Shown in pieces: positions 27,201-62,187 of a stretch of DNA of 64,000 nucleotides. Every line of letters starts with the position of its first letter. Position 1 is the stretch's first letter. The translations under genes were made by a program, and so were the position numbers. The DNA is taken from IMG/VR virus record IMGVR_UViG_3300008111_000002, positions 62,001 to 126,000 of that record. One strand, given 5' to 3'. The notes beneath the pieces are model-generated. The model was not told the origin of the DNA. It saw nothing but the letters and a program-made list of their open reading frames with translations, and ran no database searches.

Positions 27201-29155
27201 AGATAACTTAATGAAATTCCTATTTCAGAATCCACAATACCGTTGCCGAGTTTATAACTTAAAATTGTTGTTCCCTTAAAATTTGTAACAGGATATTTGG
27301 TAGAATTTCCAAAAGAAACTTTGTCAGAATCAAACACATCAAATAACGGACTTTGATTTACTGCTGTTTTTTCTTGACTCTTTGACCAAGCAGTTCCGTC
27401 ATAATGAAACATCTTTCCTCTATACTTTTTACCTTTGTTTATAAGAACACATTCGCCAGATTGACTAACTGCATCACTGGCTTCAACTAAACTAATTTGT
27501 CTACCAGTATTGCCACTATATTGTGTTGATATAAAATTAACAATATAAATTTTATTGTTAACTAGAGTATCTGTATCGGCAGTAACTAATAATCTTGCAC
27601 CATTGAATAGTGCCTCTCCGTCAATATTATAACCACTAGTTCCTTCGATAACACTGAAAATATCAGATGTGTAATTATCTATAAAATCAACTGACTTTTT
27701 AGAGGTAGAGCCGTGATTAAACAATTGAATATTAGGATGATATTCGATAATTGGTCTTTTTGCTCTTGATGATTCGTCTGCATCTGGAGACGAATTGTTA
27801 AGTTGATGAGCATATTCTATAACACTTTTATGAAACCATCTATTTGACCTAGACCAAGGATTATTATCATTACTAGCACGATTTGAAATAATATAATCTT
27901 TTACGCCAGGGTAAAAAGCTGCTTCATCAAAAGGAACGGTATCAAATCCCTCGTTATCAAAAATTATTTCAGGTTGATTATTAGAAGTAATTGGCGGGGT
28001 CAAATCGTCAAAATTTATTAGATTAATACCTTTACCAACACCTTCAATTATCCAACGTCCAGAATTATATTTTTCAGGATATGTTTTACCTAAAAAGGAA
28101 ATCATTAAACCATTAGTAAATTTTACATTATTACTACTAGTGTAGGCTAACTTTTGTAAGATTTCTTTTTCAACATCTATAAATGTATTTTCTGTAATAT
28201 CCTTGATAATAAATTGGCCTGTTCGCAAAGGCTCTTGATCGCTGACATAATATAGCATATCAGGAGAATCTACAGGTACTGTGAATGTAACAGTGCCAAC
28301 TTCAATACCGTTATTAATTACACCTTTATTATAATAGTTAACATCTATTAATTCAGTTAATTCCCAATCTTGTGAAAATTCATCAATAGTACTGCCGTCA
28401 CCGTAAACATCGACTTTTGCTTTCCATAGTTTATTATTAAATTCAACAACGTCGCCCGGTTGGTAATTCATTAATGGGTTAAATTCTCCCATTACAAGAT
28501 CTACTGAATTTGTTGTTCTAATTGAAAATTTATTTCTTGGAGAGTTAACCTCAAACTTATAAGTTTGGCCTCTATACAAAACTAATTTGGGATTAAATGT
28601 CAGTCCATCTGGATAAAACATCCATGACGGGACATCGCCTGTGTCATCAGATCTAACTCTATAAGTCGATTCTATCTGTTGTGCTTGACCTGCAACAGCT
28701 ACTAAGGGCGGTCCATTAACCTGCCAGTAATATTCTCTAAAATTAACAAATTTATCCCAGTCAATGGGAGGATCCCACGAGTAACACTGGCTTTGCGTAA
28801 TTAAATCATCTCTTTCTAATTTATTAAAAAAGAAGTTTAATTGATTTTTAAAATCTAAATAATCGTAAAAATTGTTTACTGATCCGTTGCCGTCAGTAAC
28901 AACCACTCCTGGTTCTAACTGATATCTACTTCTTAAAGTATTATCAGTATCAATATAAATGTCATTGCCGTTATAACTTTTACCGTATCTTCTCCCAATA
29001 AATCCAGAAATTTTTTCTAAAACTCCGGGCTGTATTAGTGGGTCAAAAACACCACCTAAAAATTTACTGTTGGCATCTGTCTTAAAAACAGAAGGAAGAA
29101 AATCCGTTGATCTTCTTATTGGTAATCCACTTTGATCAAAAACTTTATCTGTCAT
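15260..29155 (-). CDS. Giant baseplate wedge-like structural protein (4631 aa)
   Basis: Uninterrupted ORF immediately downstream of gp6; CBM5/12-like 'Y..GD.V.Y.G..W.A' modules, 'GSGY...P.V.I.G.GSGA' repeats, FG-GAP-like 'FG.S' propeller repeats. Confidence 0.75.
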   Translation of the reverse strand: MTDKVFDQSGLPIRRSTDFLPSVFKTDANSKFLGGVFDPLIQPGVLEKISGFIGRRYGKSYNGNDIYIDTDNTLRSRYQLEPGVVVTDGNGSVNNFYDYLDFKNQLNFFFNKLERDDLITQSQCYSWDPPIDWDKFVNFREYYWQVNGPPLVAVAGQAQQIESTYRVRSDDTGDVPSWMFYPDGLTFNPKLVLYRGQTYKFEVNSPRNKFSIRTTNSVDLVMGEFNPLMNYQPGDVVEFNNKLWKAKVDVYGDGSTIDEFSQDWELTELIDVNYYNKGVINNGIEVGTVTFTVPVDSPDMLYYVSDQEPLRTGQFIIKDITENTFIDVEKEILQKLAYTSSNNVKFTNGLMISFLGKTYPEKYNSGRWIIEGVGKGINLINFDDLTPPITSNNQPEIIFDNEGFDTVPFDEAAFYPGVKDYIISNRASNDNNPWSRSNRWFHKSVIEYAHQLNNSSPDADESSRAKRPIIEYHPNIQLFNHGSTSKKSVDFIDNYTSDIFSVIEGTSGYNIDGEALFNGARLLVTADTDTLVNNKIYIVNFISTQYSGNTGRQISLVEASDAVSQSGECVLINKGKKYRGKMFHYDGTAWSKSQEKTAVNQSPLFDVFDSDKVSFGNSTKYPVTNFKGTTILSYKLGNGIVDSEIGISLSYLNIDNIGDVLFEINWDVDSFTYQNQLVKTLKISSGFLKFNTLNGEVYSNTWIKTDKEFLQPIIDSQVITSVTKSITFNSVNWNESTTERIIFYKNGSLFKDQFTRTGNRNQTFVFANNFAVNDVITIKVYTDATPDQGYYEIPVGLEKNPLNQDLTSFTYGQVLDHLGTMLELDTRFTGLYPGNSNIRDISGFQKYGRRLLKHEGISALSLMLLCDKEINVIKSIDYAAKSYNQFRNNFLNLAVTLAYDLNPINFVDQIITEMSRIKTASNSFADSDMIGSGSYKKVICKIEDQIKTFALNEKFSLDTLSRKAVYVYKNNVQLLHGADYTFNQTFGYINFSGNLNEGDVLEVREYNTTSFNFIPSTPTKLGLYKKYVPRIFIDDTYITPTKVIQGHDGSITVAFNDFRDDLLLELERRIYNNIKVQYESTVFDIDATLGGYYNTGIFTKEQVDSILEPYFLTWITSGNVDYVNNTYFDSENTFTYTYNLMTDFTQQKNLVGWWRGVYQWVYDTDRPHTCPWEMLGFSEKPIWWDEEYGPAPYTRNNLILWEDIRDGRIRRGSRAGTHQRYRRSTILSHIPVNDQGQLLSPLQANLAQDFVLINSKGNFKFGDISPAEAAWRKSPQYPFALMSALSLLRPFEFISKSLDSFRVKTNIIGQTVYSETNKFIDINSILIPSVNGLQTTGLLNYIIDYIKGQDKDTELLTKKIKNLDIKLSNKLGGFVDATQQKYLLDSKNPKSKSSSIFIPQENYNIIFNIGTPFLTINYSGVIIEKVNTGWRLSGYDNKNPYFNYYEAVESKTDPFITVGGVTDSFLVWEPNKNYQIGQTVQYQGKYFKVLSSHQSITSFDEKLFKQISKLEQVGAVEVLKRQNFNFNTLKKLSYGTVLPTLQSVANFIFGYDQYLLTLGMIFDQYNYETQTVNNWTTSVKEFMFWSKHNWAEGQLITLSPAAYKFHIKFGLGSVDNLLDSFYDYAIYKRDGTVLSSSFINVNRDYQEFSITVTDTLDGIYFANINFVLKEHVVLFDDKTVFNDVLYDKTSGYRQDRVKVIGFRTTDWDGDYTSPGFIFDNVNVQSWQQYTDYNLGDIVRYREFFWTSKKKQEGTIEFNETNWTKLDNIPSKGLVANFDYRINQFEDYYDLDSDGLGSSQRDLARHSIGYQSREYLNNLSEDSVSQFKIYQGFIREKGTKNAITKIFDKLSRNNTDSVILKEEWAFRVGDFGGTDQYKEYEIALNKGQFKLTPQPLLINNSIEYSETNDLYYRIPINDFVIKPYGADKNIIPVAYQNVPNRTAGYVREDQVDFKTAKLENVLSLSADTINYGDHIWTTFVEPDQWSVFRYTRSNILIDSLEVNNSDKIVTLTCNVRHNFTVDQIIGIEGIARLSGYHKIISVEPFTFNVALPTGGDPEIDNSSLLAVGIFVDSRLTTAKELSDPQIAKLKVGDKLWIDNDENNRWEVIEKISSIYTRNEISDYGYSIPRGAGTAVIHLTFRNQTIASLPGSNGVAVYKDNFDGTLRNVQTLIAPDSFTTNLLGKFGYSLHATSDEQWLFVGSPLVSGIGSRFQGIFSETEDYEQNDIVLFAGKLWRATRNLNGDGSTITLESADWEYVYNIPADTYQDSYDPSRFYRKGSIVKFGIFSYIALQNTTNNLPINQTYWALTTAGNSGYIEQGMVSIYRWYEEQWNYEGSFVSPRPQPNELFGFSITSGISNGKYYLAISAPGAVNATGAVYLYTLNDTDNDNPIWELIEDESYQGVYDPSRQYIAGSIVYYANKLWKAKSNQQADGSTITVNSADWIEMEDTITQSSLPTSAAMVSDGTISEVGLLPDSSIFRLPEIVKQGDQFGTSIAFNSDASTLIVGSPYGDDRSFTNYKGVWKSYTLYGGGDVVRYESNYYRVNGSTSINDIPTTGINWTLIDIGTFDSSNKKFGKVFVYKRNDLGVYRLFQTINNQNLSLLSDIGLQIIETGDRLGSSVDIDATGDTLVVSAPYGDYGYVDNGYVYVFKYSRTNEKYVITNKISGSDASNFELYGTQVKISNDANSLVVSGQNSITKFNIKYDLSKTRFDQNTTTFFDKRGNTGRVYVYEKQDTEYYLAEELDPPNLIPNESFGFSLDLNDNVIVVGSPTLKTAQGVIGQVRKFKRSATAKTWSTIGQQEPQTRIDLIKSLALYDVENNKKITDVDIVDHYKYKFLGIVEQEISFKNPYDPAIYSKGNDSVIVDSSRTWYETNVGKIWVNFKTVKWTNYEQGELSYKIGHWNELADSSSVDVYEWVETKILPSQWSLIADTTEGLALNISGQPLYANDTVYNIKEVYDEKTGTVLTSYYYYWVKNSVVVPDSSNRKISAAEVALYITSPISSGIPFVGFISQDRLLAYNFEKYLPSTSAVLNIKFNNSNKNINLIHHEYELLTEGQGDSVPTLQLEQKWIDSLIGYDQAGNKVPDPNLAPKQKYGILFRPRQSMFVNKSTALKIFVDDVNAVLREKPFAETLDFTNLNAIDEVPTETLKLYDVSVETYAELITINAARVRPALLRANLIDGQIESIDIVDSGFGYRVAPPVSIVGTGSGARVTLTIDNSGKVTGYVINNPGKKYDNVILNVRGFSVLVKTDETYRNYWAIYQFNERNKTFYRSLTQDFDTTKYWSYIDWWAQGYNSSNKIIDEIPGTYYEPQLAKLIDLKVNDLIKVSEYGSGGWAVLKLINLSATTINEKYELVGRYRGTIEISSLIYDDAQNQVGYDNVGTYDLISYDNQPVSETRNIIKAIKENILIDEFKFYWNKLFFNSIHFIFSEQLYVDWAFKTSFLNAIHTIGDLEQKSHYKNDNLESYEQYLKEVKPYRTKIREFTSTYNSLENTQSLLTDFDLPPYYEDTEGKLIPVKTNNEILNTYPWKLWKDNNTYKVIEITVYDSGSGYINPPTVVINGGGGSGAEALAYVSNGSVTGVVITKEGIGYTSAPTVTLVGGFSDTGTQAKASAIIGKGTIRSFDITMKFDRISKNGTYSSFVQDETIVASGVTSVFNLKYPPSRDRSKITVYLNNGLILSNEYELSLFEQMIDGFTFIQGRIKFLLVPATGTVIRIIYSKNDEILDSVDRIKKYYNPLDGMTGKDASQLMTGIDFGGVIIQGSSFNSTGGWDALPWFSDSWDSVTPNSDYYVIADGSTTSIQLPYTPSIGQAINVYIKRGDFSTLPDKTGRFTRIDDPYYNVYDGSTVQPNGKRSAPAGVLMNTFIGNGVIKDIDLPILLATQAGDILIFRPSTSDGSVNITDTNVQDTLLSGGSLLNTNNIYSTANGLTAEEIVVSGDKFISPDQVPSPEENVPGQVLDTVSIKTFHRTYVGAAQVKSNVYFTDGIAKRFKFTNKILESKSVSVYLDKVKQGQSLDLYNISYDYYLDFKNSEIEFFVTPPAGKIVEIVSIGPGGYAILDFSEFVGDGATRYFLTKAQYVETSYIIVTVNGLEVPVSFVTSKGLLNDKDETVIEFSVPPSFNQVVKILVLGTSIEADSSGQSAIRINEQIIIHDGSTRLYDLDKFVNLERSSAAGNMLVEVNNRLIPSGDTQVIVYNGSNNSNIIGQDPYFGPGSIDVRNISVYINEIKTEFISDWILEGSTNLLTITKSLIIGDEIRIEIAQNNSYKIENNEIRLLPVLSLNPGDLIKVIWFSEYPTMSLIKDRFPGNYGVMKLRRKVTDISTVWVYKNGFRLAPEVEYEVNLTDNFVKLTNLALSTDDITLVIFGQENYNPVFAYEIFKDMLNLTHYKRYIIGQVKLTQELNYYDTQITVDNGDYLFVPDIINKIPGTVTINSERINYYQKNGNILSQLTRGILGTSIPEKHNINSDVVDVGIGESLPYREYQNKEEFISDGTSLLIGPLLTTPIKSTRNTVWYRSTIPATHGPNDQYEVFVNGKRLRKNPYKRYQETNGLASPLADIDVEAEFSVDGTTPYIRLTTAISAGSRIVIISKTGNIFYDTGLSTAASGITLINNDSVVAQFLRNKSTK

Positions 29156-29156
29156 T

Positions 29157-32100
29157 TTATTGGCTCGTATTACTAATAACTGAGGTAGCAGCTAAATTTA
29201 ATTCTGCTGCGGTAATACCTGTTACAATTTCTATATCATCCACTGTTGCTGCATTGGTAAAAATTTCATCTTGGCGAGATTGTATTTCAAACAAGCTTCC
29301 AAACTCTTGACTTATTTGTCTTGGAACAATAACAAAATTACTAATATCAGGAGATACTGAGTTAATAACATAAGTTGCTAATTCACTAAAATAAAATTTA
29401 TCTCCAAAATCCCAACCGTCAACATTAAAAAATTCATTAATAGCGCCAATAATTCTAACCTTTAAATCATTATCGCTAATAGTTTTATTAGGATTTTTTA
29501 CAACCTTAAACTGAGCTCTAAACTGAGAATCTGCTTTTGCTCCAAACAATGGTTTGAATTGTACGGGATGATAGATTATTTCATCACTGACTGATTTAAT
29601 AGAGCTTAGTTTAGATCCAAACTGTGTTCTTAATTCATTACTGTTTGGTGCTACTGGTTTGGTCCCGTCATTTCTTAACCAATTTACATAGGCAATTTCA
29701 TAGTTTTTTGTTAATAGATAAACATCGATAATATTACTTACACTAGGATCAATTCTTCTGTCTACTCCTGCATTATGGATGTATTGAAACTTTACTGAGT
29801 TTCTTCCAATGTTTGCTCTATAAGAACTATCAAGTTCAAAAGTTTTACTGCCAGTGCTGGTTTGAATAACTCGTTTGACTACTTCTTCAGACTGATCATA
29901 AAAATATATTAGTTGTCCAACATCATAGGCATTAATATTTCCTATCTCATTAGCTGTTTTGTCCTTAACTAAAATATTTCCATCGTCGCTACTTTCTATG
30001 TATTTGTAAATTTCTGCACCATATTCGTCGATGGTTCTTTGAAAAAATAGATATTTTAAATCTTTATCCTCGCCAGCAACTATTTCAAATGCATCTGGAT
30101 TATCAATGATCCCGTCATCATCAGAATCAAAAAATCCCAATTTTATAGAACTAGTACTTTGATATCCATCATTAAATCTTACGCTGTCTCTGATTTCAAA
30201 AGATATATCCTGTTTTAAAGGTGTAATTTTCGTATAATTAGAATTAATTCCAAGTATTTTAATTTGATCTTTAATTACTGCTGCATTTTTTGAATCATAA
30301 ATTTTTTCTTGATTATCAAAATAAAATCTATTTTGTTCTAAACTTTCAAAAATATAATCAAGCTCTCTAATATGAATTGAATACTGAACTCCTGTATAAA
30401 CAAACGCAACTATCCAAGATCCATCAAGATTGGTCCCAGAAGTATCACCACTTTGTGCAGAACTAAAAAATGTACTGTTAATATTAAGATTTGAAGAAGT
30501 AATGATTCTCCATTTTCTATCTTCAATACTATATCTTAAACCAAAATTTTGAAGATTAAACATTAGATTGGTTATTTCGGTTTCCAGTGCTGCATCAAAA
30601 TCTGTAATAAACTTTGGTACAATTCTTGATATTACAGCATCAGTAGGAACAACTTCACTAAAAGTAATTGGTCCTAACCCGTTCGCTAGTACACCTCGAT
30701 CGGCATTTGTTCCGTCGCCTACTGTATTAACTACTTTAACCCATAGTCTGTCTGTTTGAAACGGATCATTAACATTTGCTGTAACTAAGACTCCATTTTT
30801 AAATGCTTTACCGATTGGAGCTACAAATTTTACCAAAGAACCTGCTTCAAAAAATCTCATGTTAGTGGAAGTATAATTTCCCACTTTAATTTTTGTTTGA
30901 TCGTTGACATTACGAAAATATCCGGTAGATAAGTCTCTATCTTTGGTTACTTGTAGCCAGTGTATATTATTATCTGTAAACACCACTCTATCAAATCTTG
31001 TTAGATAAAAATTATAAACACTTGTTGAAGAAATTTCTTTTTCGATTGTGTTTCTTAAAAAATTAACAATCTGCGGACGATTAGAAAATTTAAAAGATAA
31101 TGCTTTTTCTATTTCGTTTTTATAAATTAAACCATCATCTGCAAAAACATTTACAGTAGAATATTTTCCAGTAGCATCAATAATATCAAAATTACGACTA
31201 ATACCGCTAGTAGTTCTGTTAACTGCTTTGACTTTTAAAATTTCTTGGGAAGCATCTAATGGAGCTAGATTATAATCTTCCGCAGTAATCATTCGATTTT
31301 GTGTATAATAAACTGCAGGTGCTTTTGATCTAATACTTTCGATATCTTCCGATGAGGAAGAATTTGATACCGTATATTTTAATCCTAATGATAGAGACAA
31401 TGTATTAGAAACACCCCTCTTATTAACATAAGGGATTTCAATACTAATTCCTCTCATTTCGCTTGGGCTTATAGAATAATTTAAACCGTTAGAAACTCTG
31501 TAATAAACTCTAAAACTTCCCTGCGGCAAATTTCCGTAAATACCATCACTAAACTGCAAATCAATTTTATCATCTGCCTTAGTTATTACACTATAGATAT
31601 TTCTAATATTTTTACTAACACTATTATAAAGAATATTGTTTCCAGATAAATTTGACACCTGAGTCCATTGTTCTCCTTGTGTGCCGTTTGCACCTAAAGA
31701 AAACAACCAAACATCGTCATTATTAATGTTTGCATTTTCTACAGACACTTTTTCATTTGTAGTTGGTTGAGGAATTGCAAAATCTGCTAACTCCATACTG
31801 CCTTGTTTAAACAACAGATAAAATCCTGTATTAGAGCTTGATGCTCCTTTACCGTCTGTTTTAAAAATAAATCCTAGTTGGGATCCGGGTGTCGGCGCTT
31901 CTTCTTTAATGATATTTTTTTCTGAATCAATTAGTGTACTTACTAATTCAAAAACTGTAGTTCTTGCAGCGGCTGTTTTAGTAAAAGAAAAAATTGGAAC
32001 ATCTAAAGAAAATGTATTGAACACATATTGCTGAGTCTTAATTCCATCAATAGTTGCTTCGCCTTGGCTTTTTCCAAATTCAGTGTTTGGAGTCATTGCA

Positions 32101-32585
32101 GAATTTAATATTAAAATAAATTGCTCATACCAATTAGAGTTTGTAGGATCGTTCCATACAATAGTTTGTTGTGCTAGATTCTTTCCATTACTGTCTATTA
32201 TGGGTTCTGTTGTGGTTATAGTATCAAACTTTAATAACCCTGAGGCTGCTATATTTCTTTTGGCATTATAAGAAAGCATTTTTGCTAATCTTAATACACT
32301 CTCTTTTCTATCTGCAAGATCAATGAAATTTTCTCTAGATGCAAGATCAATACGGAATGCTAGACTTTGACCTAAAAATGCAATAACATCAATAAGTGCA
32401 AGATATTCACTGCTTTCAATATAATCATTAAAGTCTTCTGGATAGTTTTCACGCAGATAGGTGATCATTACTCTGCGAAGATTTTCAAAGTCGTAGGATT
32501 TGAAATCAGCATTCTTAAATGTCTGATAAATTTTTGTCCAATCTTCAGCTAAAATTAAATTATTTTGTCTTGCAGTTGTAGTCAT
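29157..32585 (-). CDS. gp6: Baseplate wedge subunit, T4 gp6-like
   Basis: 1142 aa; 'YDFENLR..MITYL...EDFNDYIESS' and 'AP..YYTQNRMITAEDY' motifs; adjacent to gp25. Confidence 0.85.
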   Translation of the reverse strand: MTTTARQNNLILAEDWTKIYQTFKNADFKSYDFENLRRVMITYLRENYPEDFNDYIESSEYLALIDVIAFLGQSLAFRIDLASRENFIDLADRKESVLRLAKMLSYNAKRNIAASGLLKFDTITTTEPIIDSNGKNLAQQTIVWNDPTNSNWYEQFILILNSAMTPNTEFGKSQGEATIDGIKTQQYVFNTFSLDVPIFSFTKTAAARTTVFELVSTLIDSEKNIIKEEAPTPGSQLGFIFKTDGKGASSSNTGFYLLFKQGSMELADFAIPQPTTNEKVSVENANINNDDVWLFSLGANGTQGEQWTQVSNLSGNNILYNSVSKNIRNIYSVITKADDKIDLQFSDGIYGNLPQGSFRVYYRVSNGLNYSISPSEMRGISIEIPYVNKRGVSNTLSLSLGLKYTVSNSSSSEDIESIRSKAPAVYYTQNRMITAEDYNLAPLDASQEILKVKAVNRTTSGISRNFDIIDATGKYSTVNVFADDGLIYKNEIEKALSFKFSNRPQIVNFLRNTIEKEISSTSVYNFYLTRFDRVVFTDNNIHWLQVTKDRDLSTGYFRNVNDQTKIKVGNYTSTNMRFFEAGSLVKFVAPIGKAFKNGVLVTANVNDPFQTDRLWVKVVNTVGDGTNADRGVLANGLGPITFSEVVPTDAVISRIVPKFITDFDAALETEITNLMFNLQNFGLRYSIEDRKWRIITSSNLNINSTFFSSAQSGDTSGTNLDGSWIVAFVYTGVQYSIHIRELDYIFESLEQNRFYFDNQEKIYDSKNAAVIKDQIKILGINSNYTKITPLKQDISFEIRDSVRFNDGYQSTSSIKLGFFDSDDDGIIDNPDAFEIVAGEDKDLKYLFFQRTIDEYGAEIYKYIESSDDGNILVKDKTANEIGNINAYDVGQLIYFYDQSEEVVKRVIQTSTGSKTFELDSSYRANIGRNSVKFQYIHNAGVDRRIDPSVSNIIDVYLLTKNYEIAYVNWLRNDGTKPVAPNSNELRTQFGSKLSSIKSVSDEIIYHPVQFKPLFGAKADSQFRAQFKVVKNPNKTISDNDLKVRIIGAINEFFNVDGWDFGDKFYFSELATYVINSVSPDISNFVIVPRQISQEFGSLFEIQSRQDEIFTNAATVDDIEIVTGITAAELNLAATSVISNTSQ

Positions 32586-39458: not shown

Positions 39459-40469
39459 ATGAATCTATTTAAAAAAGTAGCCTGCTTTACTGACATCCAT
39501 TTTGGACTCAAAGGCGGCAGTAGGGTCCACAATCAAGATTGTGAAGATTTTGTTACATGGTTTTGTGAAACAGCCAAAGCTAATGGTTGCGAAACAGCTA
39601 TATTTCTAGGCGATTGGCATCATAATAGATCAACTACTGATGTCAGTACAATGAATTATACTGTTAGTAATCTAGAAAAATTGAATAATTCGTTTGAACG
39701 TGTATATTTGATCCTAGGTAATCACGACGAGTACTATAAAGACAAACGAGAAATACACAGTTTAGAATTTGCTAGACTATTTCCTAACATTGTACCCATT
39801 AACAAAATACATACCGACGGTGATGTAACTATTATGCCTTGGTTAATTGGTGACGAATGGCAAAAAGTTTCTAAAATTAAAAGCCGCTATATGTTTGGTC
39901 ACTTAGAACTTCCGCACTTTTATATGAATGCCATGGTGCAGATGCCAGATCACGGACAGTTGCAGAGCACACATTTTCAAAATCAAGAATATGTGTTCAC
40001 TGGACATTTCCACAAGCGTCAGACCAGCAGAAATATTACCTACATTGGTAATGCATTTCCTCACAACTATGCAGATGCAGGCGACGATGATCGCGGCATG
40101 ATGATTTTAGAATGGGGCAAAGAGCCCGAATATCATACTTGGCCTGGACAACCTGTGTTTAGAGTCTATAAACTCAGTCAAATTGTAGAAGAGCATGAAA
40201 AGTATTTGCGTGAAAAAATGCACGTCAGGGTCAATATTGACATTCCTATTACGTTTGAGGAATCCAATTTCATCAAAGAAACATTTATTAAACAATACAA
40301 GCTACGAGAAATGATGCTGATTCCGCAAAAAGAAGAAATGCAAGACATAGAATTTACGGGTGATATTGCATTTGAAAGCGTAGACACTATTGTTGTTAAC
40401 CAGTTAACAGCCATTGACTCAGAAGCATACGATAAAAAACTGTTATTGGACATTTACCATAATCTATGA
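39459..40469 (+). CDS. gp47: Recombination nuclease, Mre11/SbcD-like (T4 gp47)
   Basis: Metallophosphoesterase motifs DIH, GD, GNHD, GH, GHFH. Confidence 0.92.
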   Translation: MNLFKKVACFTDIHFGLKGGSRVHNQDCEDFVTWFCETAKANGCETAIFLGDWHHNRSTTDVSTMNYTVSNLEKLNNSFERVYLILGNHDEYYKDKREIHSLEFARLFPNIVPINKIHTDGDVTIMPWLIGDEWQKVSKIKSRYMFGHLELPHFYMNAMVQMPDHGQLQSTHFQNQEYVFTGHFHKRQTSRNITYIGNAFPHNYADAGDDDRGMMILEWGKEPEYHTWPGQPVFRVYKLSQIVEEHEKYLREKMHVRVNIDIPITFEESNFIKETFIKQYKLREMMLIPQKEEMQDIEFTGDIAFESVDTIVVNQLTAIDSEAYDKKLLLDIYHNL

Positions 40470-42241
40470 TTAGAATTAAAAATTTAACTGTTAAAAACTT
40501 TATGAGCGTTGGAAATCAAACCCAAGCCGTAGATTTTGACAAAGGTCACCTAACTCTAGTGTTGGGCGAAAACATGGATCTAGGCGGAGACGATACTGGG
40601 GCACGTAACGGTACTGGTAAAACCACTATTATCAATGGTCTCAGCTATGCAATCTACGGCAATGCTTTAACTAACATTAAAAAAGATAACCTAATTAATA
40701 AAATCAACAACAAAAGTATGTTGGTTACTGTGACATTTGAAAAAGACGGATTAGAATATCACATAGAGCGTGGTCGTAAACCTAATCTATTAAAGTTTAG
40801 TATTAACGGACAAGAACTGCAGAGCATAGATCAAGACGAAAGTCAGGGAGATAGCCGAGAAACACAAAAGGCCATCGAAGATACTTTTGGAATGACTCAT
40901 GATATGTTTAAACATATTATGGCTCTTAACACTTATACTGAGCCTTTCCTAAGTATGAAGGCCGGGGATCAACGAGATATTATTGAACAACTGCTGGGTA
41001 TCACAATATTAAGTGAAAAAGCTGACAGTCTAAAAGAAAGTATTCGTCTTTCTAAAGAATTGATCACACAAGAAAATACAAAAATTGAAACTGTCAAACT
41101 CAGCAATCAAAAAATTCAACAGAGTATTGATGCGCTGCAAAGAAAACAAACACTTTGGCAGCAGACCAAAGAAGCAAACATCGATAGCCTAAATAAATCT
41201 ATCAAAAAACTCAGTTTGATAGACATTGAAAAAGAAATTCAAGCACATAAAGATCTTACAGAATGGTTAAAAACTAAGTCTGATATTGACAACGTTAATA
41301 GTCTTATCAGTAAGTTGAATATACAGCTGGAAAAAGAACAAAAAATTCTTGTTAGATCAGAATCTGAATTAGCTCAACTACTAGATCACAAATGTCATGC
41401 CTGTGGACAAGATATCCACGACAGTAAACATACAGACATGCTAGCACAAAAACAAGCAGCCGTAGAAGAAAGTCTACGTCTGGTACAGGAACATGAACAA
41501 GAATTTGCAGCTCTTAATGAAGCAAAGTCTATTCTTGGTGAATTGGGTCCACAACCTGCAACAAACTATGACAGTTTAGAGGAAGCACTCAATCATAAAA
41601 ATACTGTAGACAACTTGATCAAAGAAGTTGCTACTAAAACTAAAGAAGTAGATCCCTACACAGAACAAATTGAAGAATTAAAAAATACAGCACTACAAGA
41701 AATTGACTGGAATTCTGTAAACGAACTGACCCGTGTTAAAGAGCATCAAGAGTTTTTACTTAAATTGTTGACTAACAAGGACAGTTTTATTCGTAAAAAG
41801 ATTATTGATCAGAATCTAAGTTTCTTAAACAACAGATTAGGCTACTATCTTGATGCAATCGGATTACCTCATTCTGTTAAGTTCCAAAACGATCTTACTG
41901 TGCTGATTACACAGCTAGGGCAAGATTTAGATTTTGATAACCTATCAAGAGGCGAGCGTAATCGTTTAATTCTAAGTTTAAGCTTTGCATTCCGCGACGT
42001 GTGGGAAAACCTCTATCAAAATATCAACTTATTGTTTATTGACGAGTTAGTCGACAGTGGCATGGATGCTAGCGGTGTGGAAAGTTCTATTAAGATACTT
42101 AAGAAAATGACTCGTGAACGTGATAAGAATGTATTTTTAATCAGTCACAGAGATGATTTAACTAACAGAGTTAATCAAGTTCTTAAAGTTATCAAAGAAA
42201 ACGGGTTTACTAGCTACGCTACAGATGTAGAATTGGTATGA
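40466..42241 (+). CDS. gp46: Recombination ATPase, Rad50/SbcC-like (T4 gp46)
   Basis: Walker A NGTGKTT, coiled coil with CHAC zinc hook, signature LSRGE, Walker B LLFIDE. Confidence 0.95.
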   Translation: MIRIKNLTVKNFMSVGNQTQAVDFDKGHLTLVLGENMDLGGDDTGARNGTGKTTIINGLSYAIYGNALTNIKKDNLINKINNKSMLVTVTFEKDGLEYHIERGRKPNLLKFSINGQELQSIDQDESQGDSRETQKAIEDTFGMTHDMFKHIMALNTYTEPFLSMKAGDQRDIIEQLLGITILSEKADSLKESIRLSKELITQENTKIETVKLSNQKIQQSIDALQRKQTLWQQTKEANIDSLNKSIKKLSLIDIEKEIQAHKDLTEWLKTKSDIDNVNSLISKLNIQLEKEQKILVRSESELAQLLDHKCHACGQDIHDSKHTDMLAQKQAAVEESLRLVQEHEQEFAALNEAKSILGELGPQPATNYDSLEEALNHKNTVDNLIKEVATKTKEVDPYTEQIEELKNTALQEIDWNSVNELTRVKEHQEFLLKLLTNKDSFIRKKIIDQNLSFLNNRLGYYLDAIGLPHSVKFQNDLTVLITQLGQDLDFDNLSRGERNRLILSLSFAFRDVWENLYQNINLLFIDELVDSGMDASGVESSIKILKKMTRERDKNVFLISHRDDLTNRVNQVLKVIKENGFTSYATDVELV

Positions 42242-42474
42242 GTACAGAAGCGCACGACAGAATGATCTATGCTTTTCAGCAATATTTCAAATGGCAAACA
42301 CGTTTTGAGTACAAAAGATCAAAAGAGGCCGGAATTAAGGCACGATATTGGCTATCACAAATACGTAACGAGGCAAGCACAAGGCGAGTAGAAATACAAG
42401 ATAAACAAAATGAAAGAAAAGCGGCCAGAAAAGGCATAGTGGGGAGACCTCCAAACGTAAGTAAGGACATATGA
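42238..42474 (+). CDS. Small basic helical protein (Hc1-like nucleic-acid-binding candidate)
   Basis: 78 aa, K/R-rich; 'KEAGIKAR..LSQIR..A..RR.EIQ'; ATGA overlaps at both ends. Confidence 0.6.
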   Translation: MSTEAHDRMIYAFQQYFKWQTRFEYKRSKEAGIKARYWLSQIRNEASTRRVEIQDKQNERKAARKGIVGRPPNVSKDI

Positions 42475-42914
42475 CATGGACTTATCACGGACAAACTGTA
42501 GACCAATTACCTGAAGATTGTATAGGATTTGTTTACATCATCACTAATTTGATATCTGGGCGCAAGTACATAGGCAAAAAGCTGGCAAAATTTTCAAAAA
42601 CAACTTATAAAACAGTCAAACTTAAAAACGGCAACAAAAAGAAAAAGAAAATTCGCAGTAAAATTGATTCAGATTGGCGTGATTACTACGGGTCTAATCA
42701 AGAATTGCTAGCAGATGTACAAAATTTAGGCGCAGAAAACTTCACAAGAGAAATACTTTTTTACTGTAAATCCAAGGCAGAATGCAGTTATATTGAGGCT
42801 AGAGAACAATTTACGCAGAAAGTTTTGGAATCAAAAGACTATTATAACGGTCATATTCAAGTAAGAGTACACGGCTCACATATACTCAAGGCTCAAGAAA
42901 ACAAGGCAAAATAA
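42471..42914 (+). CDS. GIY-YIG endonuclease (Seg/endonuclease II-like), catalytic domain only
   Basis: 147 aa; 'GFVYIITN...RKYIGKK', 'YYGS', 'YIEAREQF', 'YYN'. Confidence 0.85.
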   Translation: MTWTYHGQTVDQLPEDCIGFVYIITNLISGRKYIGKKLAKFSKTTYKTVKLKNGNKKKKKIRSKIDSDWRDYYGSNQELLADVQNLGAENFTREILFYCKSKAECSYIEAREQFTQKVLESKDYYNGHIQVRVHGSHILKAQENKAK

Positions 42915-43410: not shown

Positions 43411-44802
43411 ATGAAAGTCAAAGATCTAATCGTCGAAAACAAAATAGACGAAGCACCGATGGGTACATTAAAATCGTTTGGATTAACATCACTATCAAAA
43501 GTTAGTCCTACAGCAAGTGGAAAATTACAATCGGGTACTATGGCTAATCAGTTGTCTGCTGATTTCAAAGAGTATCTTGGTAAAACAGGACAAACAGCCG
43601 AACCTGATATTGTATTGGCTTTCTTAAAGTCTAAAGGAATCCCTACAGATAGTGCTGAGAAAATTATTGCAGCAGGTCCAGACAAAGGTGTGCTTGCTAA
43701 AGGCATGGACGCTGTCAAGGGAATGTTTAAGGGCAAGCCAGGAGAACAACCTCAACAGGGAAATCAACCTACTCCTCAAGATACTAATCCTCAACCAAAA
43801 GGAAGAATTGAGCCTAAACTAGAACCAGAACAACCACAACCGAGTGCAGAAAAACAACCGGCGCAGAAACCCAACTTTAGTAATCAGCTAGGTGGAGGAC
43901 AACAAAAAATATCCACCGGCGGAGCAACTGCACCTGCAGGCGGATTACCGTCTACAACAGATCCTAGAACAGCAGTTAATAAGCCAGCTGCAGACACAAC
44001 AACTGCACCACAACAATCAACTGGTCGTAAGCAAGGCGGTGGAAAGGTTGCAGGCGTTCAAAGCCAATCACCGAGTGCAGTTCGTCGAAGAGAACAACGA
44101 GCAGCAGCTGGTAAATCCAGTAGTACTGGTGGAGCAATTGATCAGTTTGTTAAAACACAAACAGGTTCTAATCCTGTAACAATGAAAACAGAACCACAAC
44201 AAAATCCAGTACCTCAAAAACAAAAACAACAGCGTCAAAGAAAAAAGCCAGCTGGCAAAGTAGGTGATGCAGATTGGAGTCGTAATGCACAGCCTAGTTT
44301 TGGCGAAGCATTAGAATACGAATATAATCTGTTACTAGAAGCGTTAAGTAAAGGCCAATTAGATAAAATTTTTATGGCAGCAGCACAAGATGCAGCCAAA
44401 GCCGGAGTTCAAGGAGTTAGCAGTAAAGCACAAGGCGGTGCTCAATCCGCCGGCGGCACACAAGCCGGAGCACAGGCTAGCGGTGGTCAACAACAGGGCG
44501 GAGCAGGAGCATCAGGCGGTGGCGGAGCTCTTGGAGGATTTGCTAGAGGTCTAATGGGTCAAGATGACAGTGAAGGTGATGGAAAAGTCAAAGGCACATT
44601 AAATGTTAATCAATTAGCTTCGCTGTTACCAGGAGTTGATCCAAAATTGTTAGCACAAGCAATTACAGTTGTACGACAAGGAAAAAATCCTTCAAGAAAT
44701 CAAATGACAGCATTGGGAAATGCTATGATAGCAATTATTAAAGCTGACTCTCAAACAACTACTCAGGTAATGCAATTATTAAAAAGAGTTAGCCAACAAT
44801 GA
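43411..44802 (+). CDS. Hypothetical protein with long Q/P/G-rich linker; candidate internal head protein
   Basis: 463 aa; N-terminus 'MKVKDLIVENKIDEAP'; low-complexity middle. Confidence 0.6.
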   Translation: MKVKDLIVENKIDEAPMGTLKSFGLTSLSKVSPTASGKLQSGTMANQLSADFKEYLGKTGQTAEPDIVLAFLKSKGIPTDSAEKIIAAGPDKGVLAKGMDAVKGMFKGKPGEQPQQGNQPTPQDTNPQPKGRIEPKLEPEQPQPSAEKQPAQKPNFSNQLGGGQQKISTGGATAPAGGLPSTTDPRTAVNKPAADTTTAPQQSTGRKQGGGKVAGVQSQSPSAVRRREQRAAAGKSSSTGGAIDQFVKTQTGSNPVTMKTEPQQNPVPQKQKQQRQRKKPAGKVGDADWSRNAQPSFGEALEYEYNLLLEALSKGQLDKIFMAAAQDAAKAGVQGVSSKAQGGAQSAGGTQAGAQASGGQQQGGAGASGGGGALGGFARGLMGQDDSEGDGKVKGTLNVNQLASLLPGVDPKLLAQAITVVRQGKNPSRNQMTALGNAMIAIIKADSQTTTQVMQLLKRVSQQ

Positions 44803-45266
44803 GATTTTACGAATTTGATTTAATTAAACCTAAACATCCCGACGAACTTGTAGATAAAGGTGTATCGGCTGCAAAATCTGTGGCTAAAAAGACTATCAGC
44901 GGAACTAAAAGTGCATTAGGCATGGCCGGAAAAGGGTTAGCTAAAGTAACCGGGATGGTATTTAGAGATTTTGATCCAGCCATGCAAGATCTTTACAAAG
45001 ACGGTGATAGTAAACAAAATCAAACTCAAAAATCAGTATCTGACGACAGCAAAAAAAGATTTAAAAATACGTTGGGAAAAAGTTTAAACAATGAATTTTT
45101 AACTCAAGATGAAAGAAACGAATTAAAAATAGGTCTAACCCAGGGGTGGTTTCCAAGTATGCAATCACCTGAATTTAAAACAGCATTAGAAAAATTAATT
45201 AATAAAGAAAATCTTAACGGATCTGAATTAATATTATTAAAAAGAGTACACGCTAAACTTTTTTAA
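44799..45266 (+). CDS. Hypothetical protein
   Basis: 155 aa, ATGA-coupled to the upstream gene; starts MRFYEF. Confidence 0.7.
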   Translation: MRFYEFDLIKPKHPDELVDKGVSAAKSVAKKTISGTKSALGMAGKGLAKVTGMVFRDFDPAMQDLYKDGDSKQNQTQKSVSDDSKKRFKNTLGKSLNNEFLTQDERNELKIGLTQGWFPSMQSPEFKTALEKLINKENLNGSELILLKRVHAKLF

Positions 45267-45496
45267 AAAAATGGTAGTCCTGTTTTTTTAGTAGTTTCTA
45301 AATTATCTTTTACAATTTCACCAATTATTTTACGTTCTTCATAACTGAGGTGCATTGCTTCGGTGTAAGACATCCCGCGCATGTACCAACATAATTTAAG
45401 TACATCGCGTTTTATTTCCAGAGCCTGTTTGTCTAACTGATCAACATACTGTAAGATCTCCGGCTCTGATAGCTCTAAGACCTTACCGCGAAAAAA
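45263..45496 (-). CDS. -1 frame extension of the gp26-like gene (gp51-like/tail-assembly-chaperone GT-like segment); not in the ORF track
   Basis: Open -1 frame FFRGKVLELSEPEILQYVDQLDKQALEIKRDVLKLCWYMRGMSYTEAMHLSYEERKIIGEIVKDNLETTKKTGLPFF*; no ATG/GTG/TTG between the upstream in-frame TGA and the last 39 codons. Confidence 0.65.
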   Translation of the reverse strand, partial: FFRGKVLELSEPEILQYVDQLDKQALEIKRDVLKLCWYMRGMSYTEAMHLSYEERKIIGEIVKDNLETTKKTGLPFF

Positions 45497-46335
45497 TTTG
45501 ATTGATCCATTGTAATTGGGGTAGTAAACTCGTGTTCACAATGGCTACATTTAACTGATTGTGGTTTTAATTCGATTTCGTTTTTTAATTCACTTACATG
45601 TTCATGTATTTTTTCAAACACATCTTTAGAAGCATTGTTAATAAAATCAGTAATAAAGGTTCTGTCAACAACAGATCCTTGCGGGGTATCAATTCTAGTA
45701 ATACATCCTGATACTAAGTCAACTGTTAAATTAGTTAACTTAATAAATCCAGTTTGAAATTTTTCAATTTTTTCTTCATCACTGATCGTTTCGTCACTAG
45801 CAATTTGAACTAATTTTTGTTGTTCAAGTGTTTGTAAACTGGCTTTGGTTATTTCTTTATAAGCATACGGACGAATTTTAATAATTAACGGATCAACATT
45901 AACAGTATCTCTATATTGGAAATTATCAAATTGACCTAACCATAGTCGAAGATTCATAGAATATTCATTTTCGCCTTTGCACGAAGGGCAATCAACGGTA
46001 ATTTCCATTTCTTCGCCGTACGTTGCTAATCTTATTGCAATTAAACAAGCGTCAATATCGATAGATGGCATGTGCCATGGATCTTTAATAGCTGGAATAC
46101 AACTTTTAATAACTTCAACGGTACTCTGTCCAGATAATAGTGCATCGGGAGTTTTAAACAACAGCTCGTCTTTGGCAGTCATTGCATATACAGGATATTC
46201 GTCATTTGCACTTCGATCTAGACTTCCGTCAGGATACCAATGACCACTGGACGGTAATTTAATCCAAATTTTTGGTTGTCTGTAAAATTGTGACAACGGG
46301 TTTACATTTTTTTGTGTAGGCTGCATTTCTGCCAT
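45475..46335 (-). CDS. gp26: Baseplate hub assembly protein, T4 gp26-like
   Basis: 286 aa; 'NPLSQFYRQP..WIKLPS.G..Y...PVYAMTAKDEL..KTPDALL.G'; CxxC pairs CPSC and CSHC. Confidence 0.75.
   Translation of the reverse strand: MAEMQPTQKNVNPLSQFYRQPKIWIKLPSSGHWYPDGSLDRSANDEYPVYAMTAKDELLFKTPDALLSGQSTVEVIKSCIPAIKDPWHMPSIDIDACLIAIRLATYGEEMEITVDCPSCKGENEYSMNLRLWLGQFDNFQYRDTVNVDPLIIKIRPYAYKEITKASLQTLEQQKLVQIASDETISDEEKIEKFQTGFIKLTNLTVDLVSGCITRIDTPQGSVVDRTFITDFINNASKDVFEKIHEHVSELKNEIELKPQSVKCSHCEHEFTTPITMDQSNFFAVRS
45490..45496 (-). promoter_or_regulatory. Slippery heptamer U UUU UUC (candidate -1 programmed ribosomal frameshift)
   Basis: AAT TTT TTC GCG GTA AGG TCT TAG: X XXY YYZ pattern four sense codons before the stop. 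Confidence 0.65.
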
Positions 46336-46400: not shown

Positions 46401-49070
46401 ATGGCAGTAATGATCGATATTCCTGGTGTTGGTAGCGTTGAAGCCAAAAACGCCGCTTCTGAACAGACTCTTAAAGAATTACTTAAGATTATGAAGAAGT
46501 GGGACCGCAAAATGGGCGGCGGTGGCGGCGGAGGCGGCAAGGGACCCGGCAGCGGAGGTAGTGGTGGCGGAAACGGCCCTTACGAAGAAAAAGGGGTTGT
46601 TGGACGTTCAATGAATCAGTTTGGATTAGCTCTAAATAGAGCCACCGGACTTACTATCAAACTTGCAGACGGTATTACTAACACACTAAGTCGATTAGCT
46701 AACATGGGTGACAGTGTTACAGGTGCAGCAGCAGTTTTTGAAAAAATTCCTATTATGGGAACTGTGTTTGCTGCTGTTGCAGGTGCAGTAGAAAAAACAA
46801 CAGCCGCTTATCAAAATGCTTCACAATCAGGTGCAACATTTGGCAACAGTGTAAACAATTTTGCCGCAGCCGCTAGTGCTGCAGGCATGACAATGGCAGA
46901 TTTTGGAAAATTAATTTCTCAAAATGGTGAATCATTACGATTACTTGGCGGCAATACAGAAAGTGGCGGAAAACGATTTGCAGACATTAGCAAAACATTA
47001 AGAGCTACCAGTCGTGACCTGTATAACATGGGCTATAGTACAGAAGAAGTTAATCAAGGATTAGCCAATTATACTAAGCTTACAGTACAGGGCGGTAGAA
47101 ATACTAACATGACTAATGCACAGTTAGTTGATGGTACTAGAAAATATCTTAAAGAGATGGATCTGTTAGCCAAGGTAACAGGTGAAACTCGTAAACAACA
47201 AGAAGAAGCACAGGCAAAATTAGCATCAGATGCGCAATATCAAGCTGCTATGGCCGGCATGAGTAAAGAAGTAGCCGACTCTTTTAGAAACACTGTAACT
47301 GGTCTTCCCGGACCTCTAAGAGATGTTGCTAAAGATATTATGGCAACTGGTTCTGCAACAACGGAAGAAAGCCAACGTTTTATGTCAATGATGCCGCAGT
47401 CTGCAGAAATGATGAGGCAATTTGCAGAAAAAACACAGCGCGGTGAAGAAATTAGTCTAGCAGAGCGTAACAAACTTAACGAAATGTTACGAGTTGAAGG
47501 TCAACAAGCAGCGTCGCAGTATAAAGACATTGGTAGATTTAGTGCAGATTTTGCCAAACAAACAAATATGTTTACTGCTGCTGCCGGTATTGGAAAAAAT
47601 GCGTTAGTAGATGGAGCAGTAGCACAAGAAGAAGCAGCTAAAACAACAGATGGTCAAGCCGCTGCTTTAGAAAGCATTAAACAACAATTAGCAGCCATTA
47701 GTAACGAATTTTTAATGATGCTATCTAGTTCTGGTATAATTGGAACAATGATGCAATTATTAGGAGCATTTGTTGCATTTGTTAGAGATTTTGTAGTACC
47801 AGCATTTCAAAATTATCTAGTACCTGCAGTCACGTGGATGGCAGAAACAATTATTAATTATGTGATACCTACTGTTAGATGGTTAGTAGAAGGTTTAATA
47901 TATTTAGGAAAAACAGTATATGATTTCCTTGTTCCTATTTTTTCTTGGTTAGGAAAAACTATTAAACATGTAATTCATGATTATGTTGTGCCAGCAATGT
48001 TAACCATTCGCGACATAATCCAAGATTACTGGAAACCGGTATTATTAGGAGTTGCTACAATAATTGCTTATAAACTTATTCCGCAATTTATTGCTATGAT
48101 ACCGGCCTTGTTGACGCAGGCTGCAACTTATATTAGTACAGCAATAGCTGTAGCTGCGGCATGGTTACCTGCAATAGCAATGGCTGCATTAGTCATAGGA
48201 GCCTTTATGGCTATTAAATGGGCTATGGATAAATTTGGTTTAGATGTAGGAATGGTAGGTGACGGATTTAAATGGCTATGGAGTTACATTAAAGAATTTG
48301 GAAATAATCTAGTACGTATATATTACGAAATAATGGATAAAATCACAGTAGGTGATGAGTATAAAGAAAAAATAAAACAAAAAGAAAAAGATATTGCCGA
48401 AAATCAACTCGAACGAGAAAAATTAGAACAAGAAATATCTGACAGAAGAAAACGAAATCTAGCTGAAAGAGAGAGAATAGAAAACGAAAGAAAGAATGAT
48501 CGATCAAAAGCGGCTGATGGAAAATATCTAGAAGCATTAACAGGGGTTAAGATGCCGAATTTTAATGGTCCAAAATTCGGCAATTATCATTTAGGTGGTG
48601 GCGGTGGCGGTGGCGGTTTCCTTCCCCCAGGCACCCAAATGCCAGGCGGTAATAGAACTATTGATGATTATAAACCGGGAGGTGCTGGCGCCGGAGGAGG
48701 TAGTAGTGCAGGCAGTCCGGGAAATATTGATCTTGGAAGTATGACCCCAGAACAATCTGCAAGATACGCTTATAGTCTAATGAATCCGTCAGCTGCTGGA
48801 GCAGATGCTCAAAGAAAACAATTAGAAGAGAAAGCCAAAACAGAAGCAGATGCTAAAGTTAAGGCAGAAGAGGATGCTAGAAAAAAATTAGAAGGTCAAA
48901 GAACATCAGCAGCACCGCCAGAATCTGCAGAATCGCTACTTGCTGGCTTAAATAACAAGATGGATCAATTAATTAAAATTAATAAATCAGTAGCCGATAC
49001 TGCAAATAGTCAATTAACTGTACAACGAGGTTTAGGAAACAATGTGTTTGCATCGCCAACGATGGCATAA
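46401..49070 (+). CDS. Tail tape measure protein
   Basis: 889 aa, Ala-rich helical; periodic 'Y/F-V-V-P...W' amphipathic repeats and hydrophobic segment; next to the gp26-like gene. Confidence 0.75.
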   Translation: MAVMIDIPGVGSVEAKNAASEQTLKELLKIMKKWDRKMGGGGGGGGKGPGSGGSGGGNGPYEEKGVVGRSMNQFGLALNRATGLTIKLADGITNTLSRLANMGDSVTGAAAVFEKIPIMGTVFAAVAGAVEKTTAAYQNASQSGATFGNSVNNFAAAASAAGMTMADFGKLISQNGESLRLLGGNTESGGKRFADISKTLRATSRDLYNMGYSTEEVNQGLANYTKLTVQGGRNTNMTNAQLVDGTRKYLKEMDLLAKVTGETRKQQEEAQAKLASDAQYQAAMAGMSKEVADSFRNTVTGLPGPLRDVAKDIMATGSATTEESQRFMSMMPQSAEMMRQFAEKTQRGEEISLAERNKLNEMLRVEGQQAASQYKDIGRFSADFAKQTNMFTAAAGIGKNALVDGAVAQEEAAKTTDGQAAALESIKQQLAAISNEFLMMLSSSGIIGTMMQLLGAFVAFVRDFVVPAFQNYLVPAVTWMAETIINYVIPTVRWLVEGLIYLGKTVYDFLVPIFSWLGKTIKHVIHDYVVPAMLTIRDIIQDYWKPVLLGVATIIAYKLIPQFIAMIPALLTQAATYISTAIAVAAAWLPAIAMAALVIGAFMAIKWAMDKFGLDVGMVGDGFKWLWSYIKEFGNNLVRIYYEIMDKITVGDEYKEKIKQKEKDIAENQLEREKLEQEISDRRKRNLAERERIENERKNDRSKAADGKYLEALTGVKMPNFNGPKFGNYHLGGGGGGGGFLPPGTQMPGGNRTIDDYKPGGAGAGGGSSAGSPGNIDLGSMTPEQSARYAYSLMNPSAAGADAQRKQLEEKAKTEADAKVKAEEDARKKLEGQRTSAAPPESAESLLAGLNNKMDQLIKINKSVADTANSQLTVQRGLGNNVFASPTMA

Positions 49071-61857: not shown

Positions 61858-62187
61858 ATGGCAACAGCATTTAAAAATACAGTTATACCAGAAATCGGAA
61901 CAACACCAACACAAGTTATTCAAACGGGAGCTTCTGCTAGAGTTACAATTATTGGATTTAGTATGACCAATTTGTTAGAGGAAGCAGTTCAGGTTAGTGT
62001 GTTAATGACAGATACATCTAGTACTACAGCATACTTTATTAAAGAAACAATTATTCCACCGTTTCAAACGTTAAGAGCAATCAATGGTGGAGAAAAATTA
62101 ATTTTAATGAGCGATAACGAAATGAAAGTTGTCAGTACAAAACCAGATTCTGTTGACGTTGTTGTAAGTTACGTAGAAATTACATAA
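61858..62187 (+). CDS. Small virion protein, distant paralog of 57582-58166
   Basis: 109 aa; 'IK...IP...TL....EK.IL...D' pattern. Confidence 0.65.
   Translation: MATAFKNTVIPEIGTTPTQVIQTGASARVTIIGFSMTNLLEEAVQVSVLMTDTSSTTAYFIKETIIPPFQTLRAINGGEKLILMSDNEMKVVSTKPDSVDVVVSYVEIT

Follow-up and report, generated by a model that had tools for sequence, protein, structure and literature searches.

A known recoding cassette of long-tailed phages is the tail assembly chaperone pair gpG/gpGT of lambda (Levin, Hendrix and Casjens 1993; Xu, Hendrix and Duda 2004; reviewed in PMC5009743), in which a -1 slip at a G_GGA_AAG heptamer near the 3' end of a gene for a protein of about 140 aa, lying upstream of the tape measure gene, yields a short and a C-terminally extended isoform sharing the same N-terminal body. 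The contractile-tail phage P2 makes gpE/gpE+E' in a similar way, with a -1 frameshift, a short extension of 50-75 aa, and genes that lie directly upstream of the tape measure gene. The G-T frameshift is regarded as near-universal in long-tailed phages, with T4 as the stated exception (PMC5009743). T4 instead encodes the hub assembly proteins gp26 and gp51, listed as 'hub assembly chaperone' in PMC3004832, by two separate, adjacent, head-to-head genes, and their roles in hub assembly have been unclear since the 1970s. In cyanophages and KVP40-like phages, a small 'gp51' or 'baseplate hub assembly catalyst' ORF is annotated directly after gp26 as an independent gene starting from an internal Met. 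In a search that did not extend to subscription literature, no paper connecting gp26 or gp51 with frameshifting was found, although the annotation 'tape measure protein assembly chaperone' for both proteins in the GenBank record of phage Stupor suggests that some specialists may already suspect the functional analogy.

The window analyzed here is a stretch of 64,000 nucleotides (positions 62,001 to 126,000) of the IMG/VR virus record IMGVR_UViG_3300008111_000002, from a T4-like giant phage. An initial annotation proposed that its gp26-like gene is fused to an unannotated downstream ORF by a -1 programmed frameshift, and that this links gp26/gp51 to the G/GT paradigm. The underlying observation is confirmed, the proposal is supported, and all the comparative tests that it called for came out in its favor. 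The locus comprises the following features:

45475..46335, minus strand: gp26-like gene, 0-frame product of 286 aa (short isoform).
45490..45496, minus strand: slippery heptamer U_UUU_UUC in X_XXY_YYZ register (codons AAU UUU UUC).
45263..45490, minus strand: -1 frame extension of 75 codons (RGKVLELSEPEIL...GLPFF) plus TAA, the C-terminal domain of the inferred 357-aa long isoform.
45451..45486, minus strand: stem-loop starting 3 nt after the heptamer, with arms at 45486-45477 (GUAAGGUCUU) and 45460-45451 (GAGAUCUUAC) and a 16-nt loop, the likely frameshift stimulator.
46401..49070, plus strand: divergent neighbor of 889 aa, a probable tape measure protein.

The gp26-like gene ends AAT TTT TTC GCG GTA AGG TCT TAG, with the six T's at 45496-45491, the C at 45490 and the TAG at 45477-45475. 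Translation of the -1 frame gives IKFFRGKVLELSEPEIL...TGLPFF* with TAA at 45265-45263, that is, 75 codons after the slip and a fusion of 282 + 75 = 357 aa. The first ATG, GTG or TTG after the slip is found only at codon 37, and the ORF starting with ATG (45263..45382, minus strand) encodes just 39 aa. The 0-frame product is a gp26 homolog, matching Pfam PF12322 T4_baseplate (5e-18, 66 bits against a cut-off of 24.5, profile positions 22-218 of 219) and phrog_150 baseplate hub (1e-20). It carries an invariant CxxC...CxxC zinc-ribbon signature (C116, C119, C263, C266) and an invariant C-terminal Phe-Phe (F281, F282), and its AF2 model reached a pLDDT of 82. A megablast of the region against the phage collection gave no match, and a PDB sequence search with the gp26 profile found no solved relative.

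The arrangement is far more than chance. The same heptamer in the same register was found in 93 of 93 related loci, including 9 isolated jumbo phages, at 28-82% protein identity. Interestingly, the codon preceding it varies in amino acid (N, D, S, H, R, Y or T) but always ends in T, and G follows the heptamer in nearly all loci. Since the Phe-Phe is conserved even in T4, part of the heptamer conservation is amino-acid-driven. The heptamer also occurs in P-SSM2, OLIVR6, PhiW-14, AsFcp_1, ACG-2014i and PG216, with the variants T TTT TTT in Melnitz and T TTT TTG in RL2RES. An artefact, such as an assembly error in the homopolymer or a recently broken gene, is refuted by these data: although such runs are error-prone and T4 gp51 shows that a single-frame version can exist, four independent metagenome assemblies from four studies contain 45200-45700 without any indel, and the same frame arrangement recurs in more than 100 loci from distant lineages, with the 0-frame stop 1-11 codons after the heptamer.

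The -1 ORF is 70-77 codons long wherever the locus holds all of it, and the peptide is conserved from the first residue after the slip, including the part upstream of its MRG motif. Per-column entropy peaks at 0-frame position 3 upstream of the heptamer (1.46) and at -1-frame position 3 downstream of it (1.27), and is already at 1.24 within the first 8 codons. The extension has 1752 database homologs and was predicted by AF2 to be helical (pLDDT 92.8), but Pfam and PHROGs searches returned no family, only scattered chance hits, and Foldseek against the PDB found nothing below E 1.

It could be argued that the downstream ORF is an independent small gene, translated by its own initiation or by reinitiation coupled to the gp26 stop. 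It is annotated as a separate CDS in P-SSM2, Melnitz, OLIVR6, Phosso, Turkey5, CBB and others, gene callers predict ORFs of 67-95 aa in metagenomes, an ATG lies just after the slip site in some lineages (Atu_ph07, Phosso, Turkey5, P-SSM2), and Atu_ph07, Phosso and Turkey5 have an ATGA overlap with the gp26 stop. However, the first start codon falls anywhere from codon 2 to 41, PA5oct has no ATG, GTG or TTG in the entire ORF, and residues upstream of every candidate start are conserved. Moreover, an independent gene does not explain the invariant U_UUU_UUC with synonymous constraint, nor why T4 gp51 carries the domain fused in frame to a gp26-like body. This alternative is considered unlikely.

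The stem-loop, identified in the minimum free energy fold, is present in most loci of the clade. On 52 sequences, 89.6% of cells are paired, against 50% or less when the partner is slid, with 36 double-sided changes against 8.3 in shuffles (0 of 500), and the changes are synonymous in the -1 frame. The stem arms also encode conserved residues (K-I-L and E-I-L), so part of their conservation is protein-driven, and the 3-nt spacer of the window's clade is shorter than the usual 5-9 nt, while it is about 6-7 nt in the RaK2-like and some other clades. The covarying stem-loop and the strict codon register are hallmarks of ribosomal frameshifting. Transcriptional slippage, in which RNA polymerase would add one U in the T6 run, would give an identical product, so that protein sequence comparison cannot separate the two routes, and a T run of 6 (8 in Melnitz) is indeed conserved. 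Nevertheless, six is short, as efficient slippage by bacterial RNA polymerase generally appears to need runs of about 9 or more. The second Phe codon is TTC, not TTT, in all but two loci seen, which shortens the run but matches U_UU.C, the second most shift-prone tetramer in E. coli; U_UU.U_UU.C is among the more efficient heptamers (PMC4066793). This route seems improbable.

The same cassette is present in Kyanoviridae, Schizotequatrovirus, Angelvirus, Pootjesviridae, Ionavirus and Oliverocinquevirus. In cyanophages, KVP40-like vibriophages and relatives, the -1 ORF is the annotated small 'gp51', or is left unannotated as in ACG-2014i, and no record inspected annotates ribosomal slippage. The P-SSM2 extension finds 601 phage records, with matches that begin inside the end of gp26, and aligns to T4 gp51 residues 198-246 (E 2e-6), including residues before the annotated Met, with the alignment running across the junction. 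T4 gp51 residues 1-201 match PF12322 at 3.9e-52, and T4 gp26 and T4 gp51 both match the full profile. For the window's extension the link to the gp51 C-terminus is more tentative. A profile search of the whole T4 genome found nothing, and comparison with the single T4 gp51 sequence gave only a spurious 5% match; with the cyanophage bridge, hhalign against the T4-like and gp51 C-terminal profiles gave E 1.3e-4 and 2.5e-4 at moderate probabilities of 43-54%, to which exact positional equivalence can be added. The jumbo-phage extension also has a first helix about 13-15 residues longer than that of the small gp51 ORFs.

T4 has two PF12322 copies, whereas the frameshift-bearing PA5oct, RaK2, P-SSM2 and PG216 genomes have one each and one was found in the window's incomplete record. 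T4, Stupor and 60AhydR15PP lack the heptamer, T4 reading GAG TTC TTT GAG.

Taken together, the gp26-like gene is, with high confidence though on comparative evidence alone, best read as a recoding gene. Most ribosomes would read through U_UUU_UUC in frame and stop four codons later, giving the 286-aa protein, while a fraction, stalled by the stem-loop, would slip back one base with the two Phe tRNAs on UUU UUC and continue for 75 codons. In this model, the short form is the counterpart of T4 gp26, although the window's body is about 75 aa longer. The long form would be the counterpart of T4 gp51, with a gp26-like body followed by a 50-75-aa helical C-terminal domain containing the [LM][SP]xxER motif, fused in frame in T4. 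The cassette is shared by jumbo RaK2-, PA5oct- and Atu_ph07-like phages, cyanophages, KVP40-like phages and other T4-like lineages, while T4 and its close relatives carry two head-to-head paralogous genes and are inferred to have lost the slippery site.

By analogy with lambda G/GT, the two isoforms probably act together in a fixed ratio as assembly chaperones for the hub and tape measure and are not part of the finished virion. This role is inferred. Fold searches gave only weak hints of a tail-assembly-chaperone-like core: the HK97 structure 2ob9_A ranked 14 at E 0.72, an AFDB entry named 'Tail assembly chaperone' scored E 0.027 against residues 108-254, Xylella 140-aa proteins scored probability 0.85-0.91, and VIA-align found nothing above Z 8. 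As in lambda, the gene lies beside the probable tape measure gene and the products are, on indirect evidence only, apparently non-structural: the divergent neighbor is listed in the CBB virion proteome table as displayed and the gp26 homolog is not, and the PA5oct gp26 homolog carries no mass-spectrometry note while its neighbors do. The cassette is likewise conserved despite low protein similarity. Unlike gpG, the protein belongs to PF12322, is about 280 aa long and has a zinc ribbon, the heptamer is different, a downstream stem-loop is present, and the gene is divergent from, not upstream of, the probable tape measure gene; in KVP40-like PG216 it follows the tail tube gene. No sequence relationship to the P2 proteins was detectable. 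The tape measure assignment itself rests on an Atlas feature search hitting tape-measure families at 0.94, on the syntenic RaK2 gene annotated tape-measure-like, and on the syntenic PA5oct and CBB proteins, which are abundant virion proteins. BLAST gave only weak matches to the PA5oct and CBB neighbors (PA5oct gp335, E 0.017) and none to T4 gp29, and a search for the tail tube gene in the window's own genome gave only a sub-threshold hit.

A conserved frameshift producing gp26-like and gp51-like isoforms from one gene offers a concrete model that predicts a fixed-ratio chaperone pair for the hub and tape measure, explains the T4 paralog pair, and adds a well-conserved bacterial U_UUU_UUC plus stem-loop cassette for frameshift studies. 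It is somewhat more likely than not that T4 gp26 and gp51 are the two isoforms of an ancestral G/GT-like frameshift gene, resolved into two genes by an inverted duplication, whereas most T4-like phages still make them by a -1 frameshift. The 'small gp51' genes in hundreds of cyanophage, vibriophage and jumbo-phage genomes would then be mis-annotated C-terminal extensions of gp26. If so, T4-like phages are not an exception to the rule that long-tailed phages make a two-isoform tail chaperone: most keep the frameshift, and T4 gets the same two proteins from two genes.

The window is part of a 209.8-kb freshwater viral contig, whose closest isolated relatives are the jumbo myophages Phosso, Atu_ph07 and PA5oct and the RaK2-like group, at 30-36% identity for the gp26-like protein. 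The gene encoding this protein matches Pfam PF12322 (T4_baseplate, 5e-18) and phrog_150 (baseplate hub), and ends AAT TTT TTC GCG GTA AGG TCT TAG. The elements at its 3' end are as follows:

45475..46335, minus strand: gp26-like gene, 286 aa in the 0 frame
45496-45490, minus strand: heptamer U_UUU_UUC
From the C of the heptamer to TAA at 45265-45263, minus strand: -1 frame, 75 codons, reading RGKVLELSEPEIL...KTGLPFF
45486-45477 paired with 45460-45451, minus strand: predicted 10-bp stem starting 3 nt after the heptamer

The first ATG, GTG or TTG of the -1 frame is at codon 37, and no Shine-Dalgarno-like sequence was seen before it. A slip would therefore give a product of 282 + 75 = 357 aa. 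Four independent metagenome assemblies carry the stretch with no indel. Every element of the initial annotation, which had described this heptamer at the end of a gp26-like gene and an open -1 frame lacking a start codon over its first half, is correct.

In a tblastn search, the 76-aa -1 peptide found Phosso, Atu_ph07 and eleven PA5oct-like phages, and the match always lies directly after the gp26 homolog and in its -1 frame. All three phages read directly have T TTT TTC in the same register. The comparison was then extended to 80 IMG/VR relatives at 47-76% identity, out of at least 582, and to six RaK2-like and other jumbo phages. Among the 93 usable loci, the heptamer TTTTTTC sits in the same register in 93 of 93. 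The preceding codon encodes N, D, S, H, R, Y or T but always ends in T, the next base is G in nearly all, and the 0 frame stops 1-11 codons later. The -1 ORF is 70-77 codons in every locus that holds all of it. Given this recurrence and the agreement of the four assemblies, an artefact is excluded.

The extension could, in principle, be an independent small gene translated by its own initiation or by reinitiation. However, the first possible start codon lies anywhere from codon 2 to codon 41, and in PA5oct there is none. The -1 peptides nevertheless align from their first residue, with the pattern R-x-[KR]-[ILV]-L..PEIL..CWYMRG..ER..NLETTKK.GLPFF, so that residues upstream of the scattered starts are also conserved. 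Moreover, column entropy by codon position switches frame exactly at the heptamer. Upstream, the most variable position is 0-frame position 3 (1.46 bits against 1.03 and 0.70), while downstream it is -1-frame position 3 (1.27 against 0.66 and 0.43), and the same holds within the first eight codons alone (1.24 against 0.78 and 0.56). Independent initiation is contradicted by these observations, as well as by the in-frame fusion found in T4 gp51 (see below). Interestingly, in PA5oct (locus L001, 3226-3260) and PhiW-14 (locus L099, 1661-1696) a terminator-like hairpin with a T run lies right after the stop of the -1 ORF and not after the 0-frame stop, and the transcription unit therefore includes the extension. 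In the window, a convergent 155-aa ORF without any family match (44799-45266, plus strand) ends 4 nt inside the end of the -1 extension, so that the two stop codons overlap, and no terminator-like site lies between the two genes.

The stem downstream of the heptamer is predicted in most loci of the clade. On 52 distinct sequences, 89.6% of cells are paired, against 50% or less when the 3' partner is slid, and there are 36 double-sided changes against 8.3 in shuffles, with 0 of 500 shuffles reaching the observed value. The compensatory changes are synonymous in the -1 frame: AAG/AAA pairs with ATC/ATT, and AGT/AGC pairs with TTA/TTG. RaK2-like phages have an analogous GCUUCU/AGAAG stem about 7 nt after the heptamer. 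The 3-nt spacer is short, and the arms also encode conserved residues. Nucleotide-level conservation of the cassette is further shown by short contigs of other phages in two of the metagenomes, which match only 45476-45531. In two lake and freshwater metagenomes, the contig word depth spikes only over the heptamer-plus-stem stretch (45472-45522), where short contigs of other phages match just these 35-48 nt at 90% identity or more.

Among the gp26 genes of other T4-like lineages, the same cassette appears in P-SSM2 and ACG-2014i (Kyanoviridae), Melnitz, OLIVR6, PhiW-14, AsFcp_1 (Straboviridae, Angelvirus), RL2RES, and the KVP40-like phage PG216. All have a 57-66-codon -1 extension after the slip, and all end in T TTT TTC except for two variants: T TTT TTT followed directly by the 0-frame stop in Melnitz (locus L096, 1459-1465), and T TTT TTG in RL2RES (locus L102, 1441-1447), where the second codon encodes Leu, not Phe. 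In several of these phages the -1 ORF is annotated from an internal Met as "baseplate hub assembly catalyst gp51", whereas in ACG-2014i it is not annotated at all. None of the records inspected shows a joined CDS. The P-SSM2 extension finds 601 phage records, and where both genes are annotated the match overlaps both features. It aligns to T4 gp51 residues 198-246 of 249 (E 2e-6), and the alignment includes the residues that span the slip site (EFFRISM against DVFKLLV). T4 gp51 residues 1-201 match PF12322 over the whole profile (3.9e-52), as does gp26. T4 gp51 is thus a gp26-like body plus the extension domain, fused in frame.

T4, Acinetobacter phage Stupor, and Aeromonas phage 60AhydR15PP have no slippery site, and T4 reads GAG TTC TTT GAG. 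In all three, gene 25 follows gene 26 and a separate ~250-aa gene 51 lies divergent from it. PF12322 copy numbers fit this picture: T4 has two copies, PA5oct, RaK2, P-SSM2, and PG216 have one each, and one was found in the window's own record, which is about 60% complete. The window-clade extension profile, however, matches the T4-like/gp51 profile only moderately, with an hhalign probability of 54% (E 1.3e-4) in a first comparison and of 43% (E 2.5e-4 over 52 columns starting at residue 1) in a second. The two profiles share the [LM][SP]xxER helix, and the position is identical.

The extension is predicted with confidence (pLDDT 92.8) to fold into a small helical domain with no PDB analogue. 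The body (pLDDT 82) has no solved relative. An invariant CxxC...CxxC motif (C116, C119, C263 and C266) across jumbo-phage gp26 homologs and T4 gp26 suggests a zinc ribbon assembled from two distant parts of the chain. The only hints of a tail-assembly-chaperone-like core are weak: the HK97 chaperone 2OB9 at rank 14 (E 0.7), an AFDB "tail assembly chaperone" at E 0.027 against residues 108-254, and Xylella 140-aa proteins at probability 0.85-0.91, with nothing convincing from VIA-align. Other genes of the window are as follows:

46401..49070, plus strand: divergent neighbour of 889 aa, probably the tape measure protein
40466-42241: gp46/SbcC-like recombination nuclease gene
42471-42914, plus strand: SegE-like GIY-YIG homing endonuclease ORF (PF19835, 4e-33), directly after the nuclease gene
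15260-29155, minus strand: single 4631-aa ORF
29157-32585, minus strand: 1142-aa ORF following it

The last two ORFs, both upstream of a gp5-like gene region, are probably giant virion or fibre-type proteins typical of jumbo phages. The PA5oct and CBB counterparts of the divergent neighbour are virion proteins, while the gp26 homolog does not appear in the CBB virion proteome table as displayed and carries no mass-spectrometry note in PA5oct. A complex prediction of the neighbour with the extension gave no answer.

Taken together, the best explanation is a -1 ribosomal frameshift at U_UUU_UUC, stimulated by the stem-loop, which would yield a major gp26-like and a minor gp51-like isoform. U_UU.C is the second most shift-prone tetramer in E. 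coli, and U_UU.U_UU.C is listed among the more efficient heptamers used by IS elements (PMC4066793). Transcriptional slippage would give the same protein and cannot be ruled out in the absence of RNA data, but it is unlikely for a 6-T run whose length is capped by a conserved C, and it is not expected to depend on codon register or on a downstream stem.

The similarity of the small ORF to the gp51 C-terminus (in a note to the PG216 record) and the shared Pfam family of gp26 and gp51 are already on record. The frameshift reading that unites them appears not to be, as searches of an open-access library for gp26, gp51 or baseplate hub together with frameshift returned nothing relevant, although subscription literature was not covered.

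That the isoforms act like lambda G/GT, with a fixed ratio, a chaperone role for the tape measure and hub, and absence from virions, is an inference. It rests on the architecture, on T4 genetics (gp26 and gp51 are listed as "hub assembly chaperone" in PMC3004832), and on the GenBank annotation of Stupor gp26 and gp51 as "tape measure protein assembly chaperone". Likewise, it is inferred from the distribution across families, and not from a phylogenetic tree, that the frameshift is ancestral and the T4 two-gene state derived. Intriguingly, T4 genes 26 and 51 (locus L004, 5803-6429, minus strand, and 6480-7229, plus strand) are adjacent, head-to-head paralogs of one Pfam family, which is consistent with an inverted duplication that replaced the frameshift.
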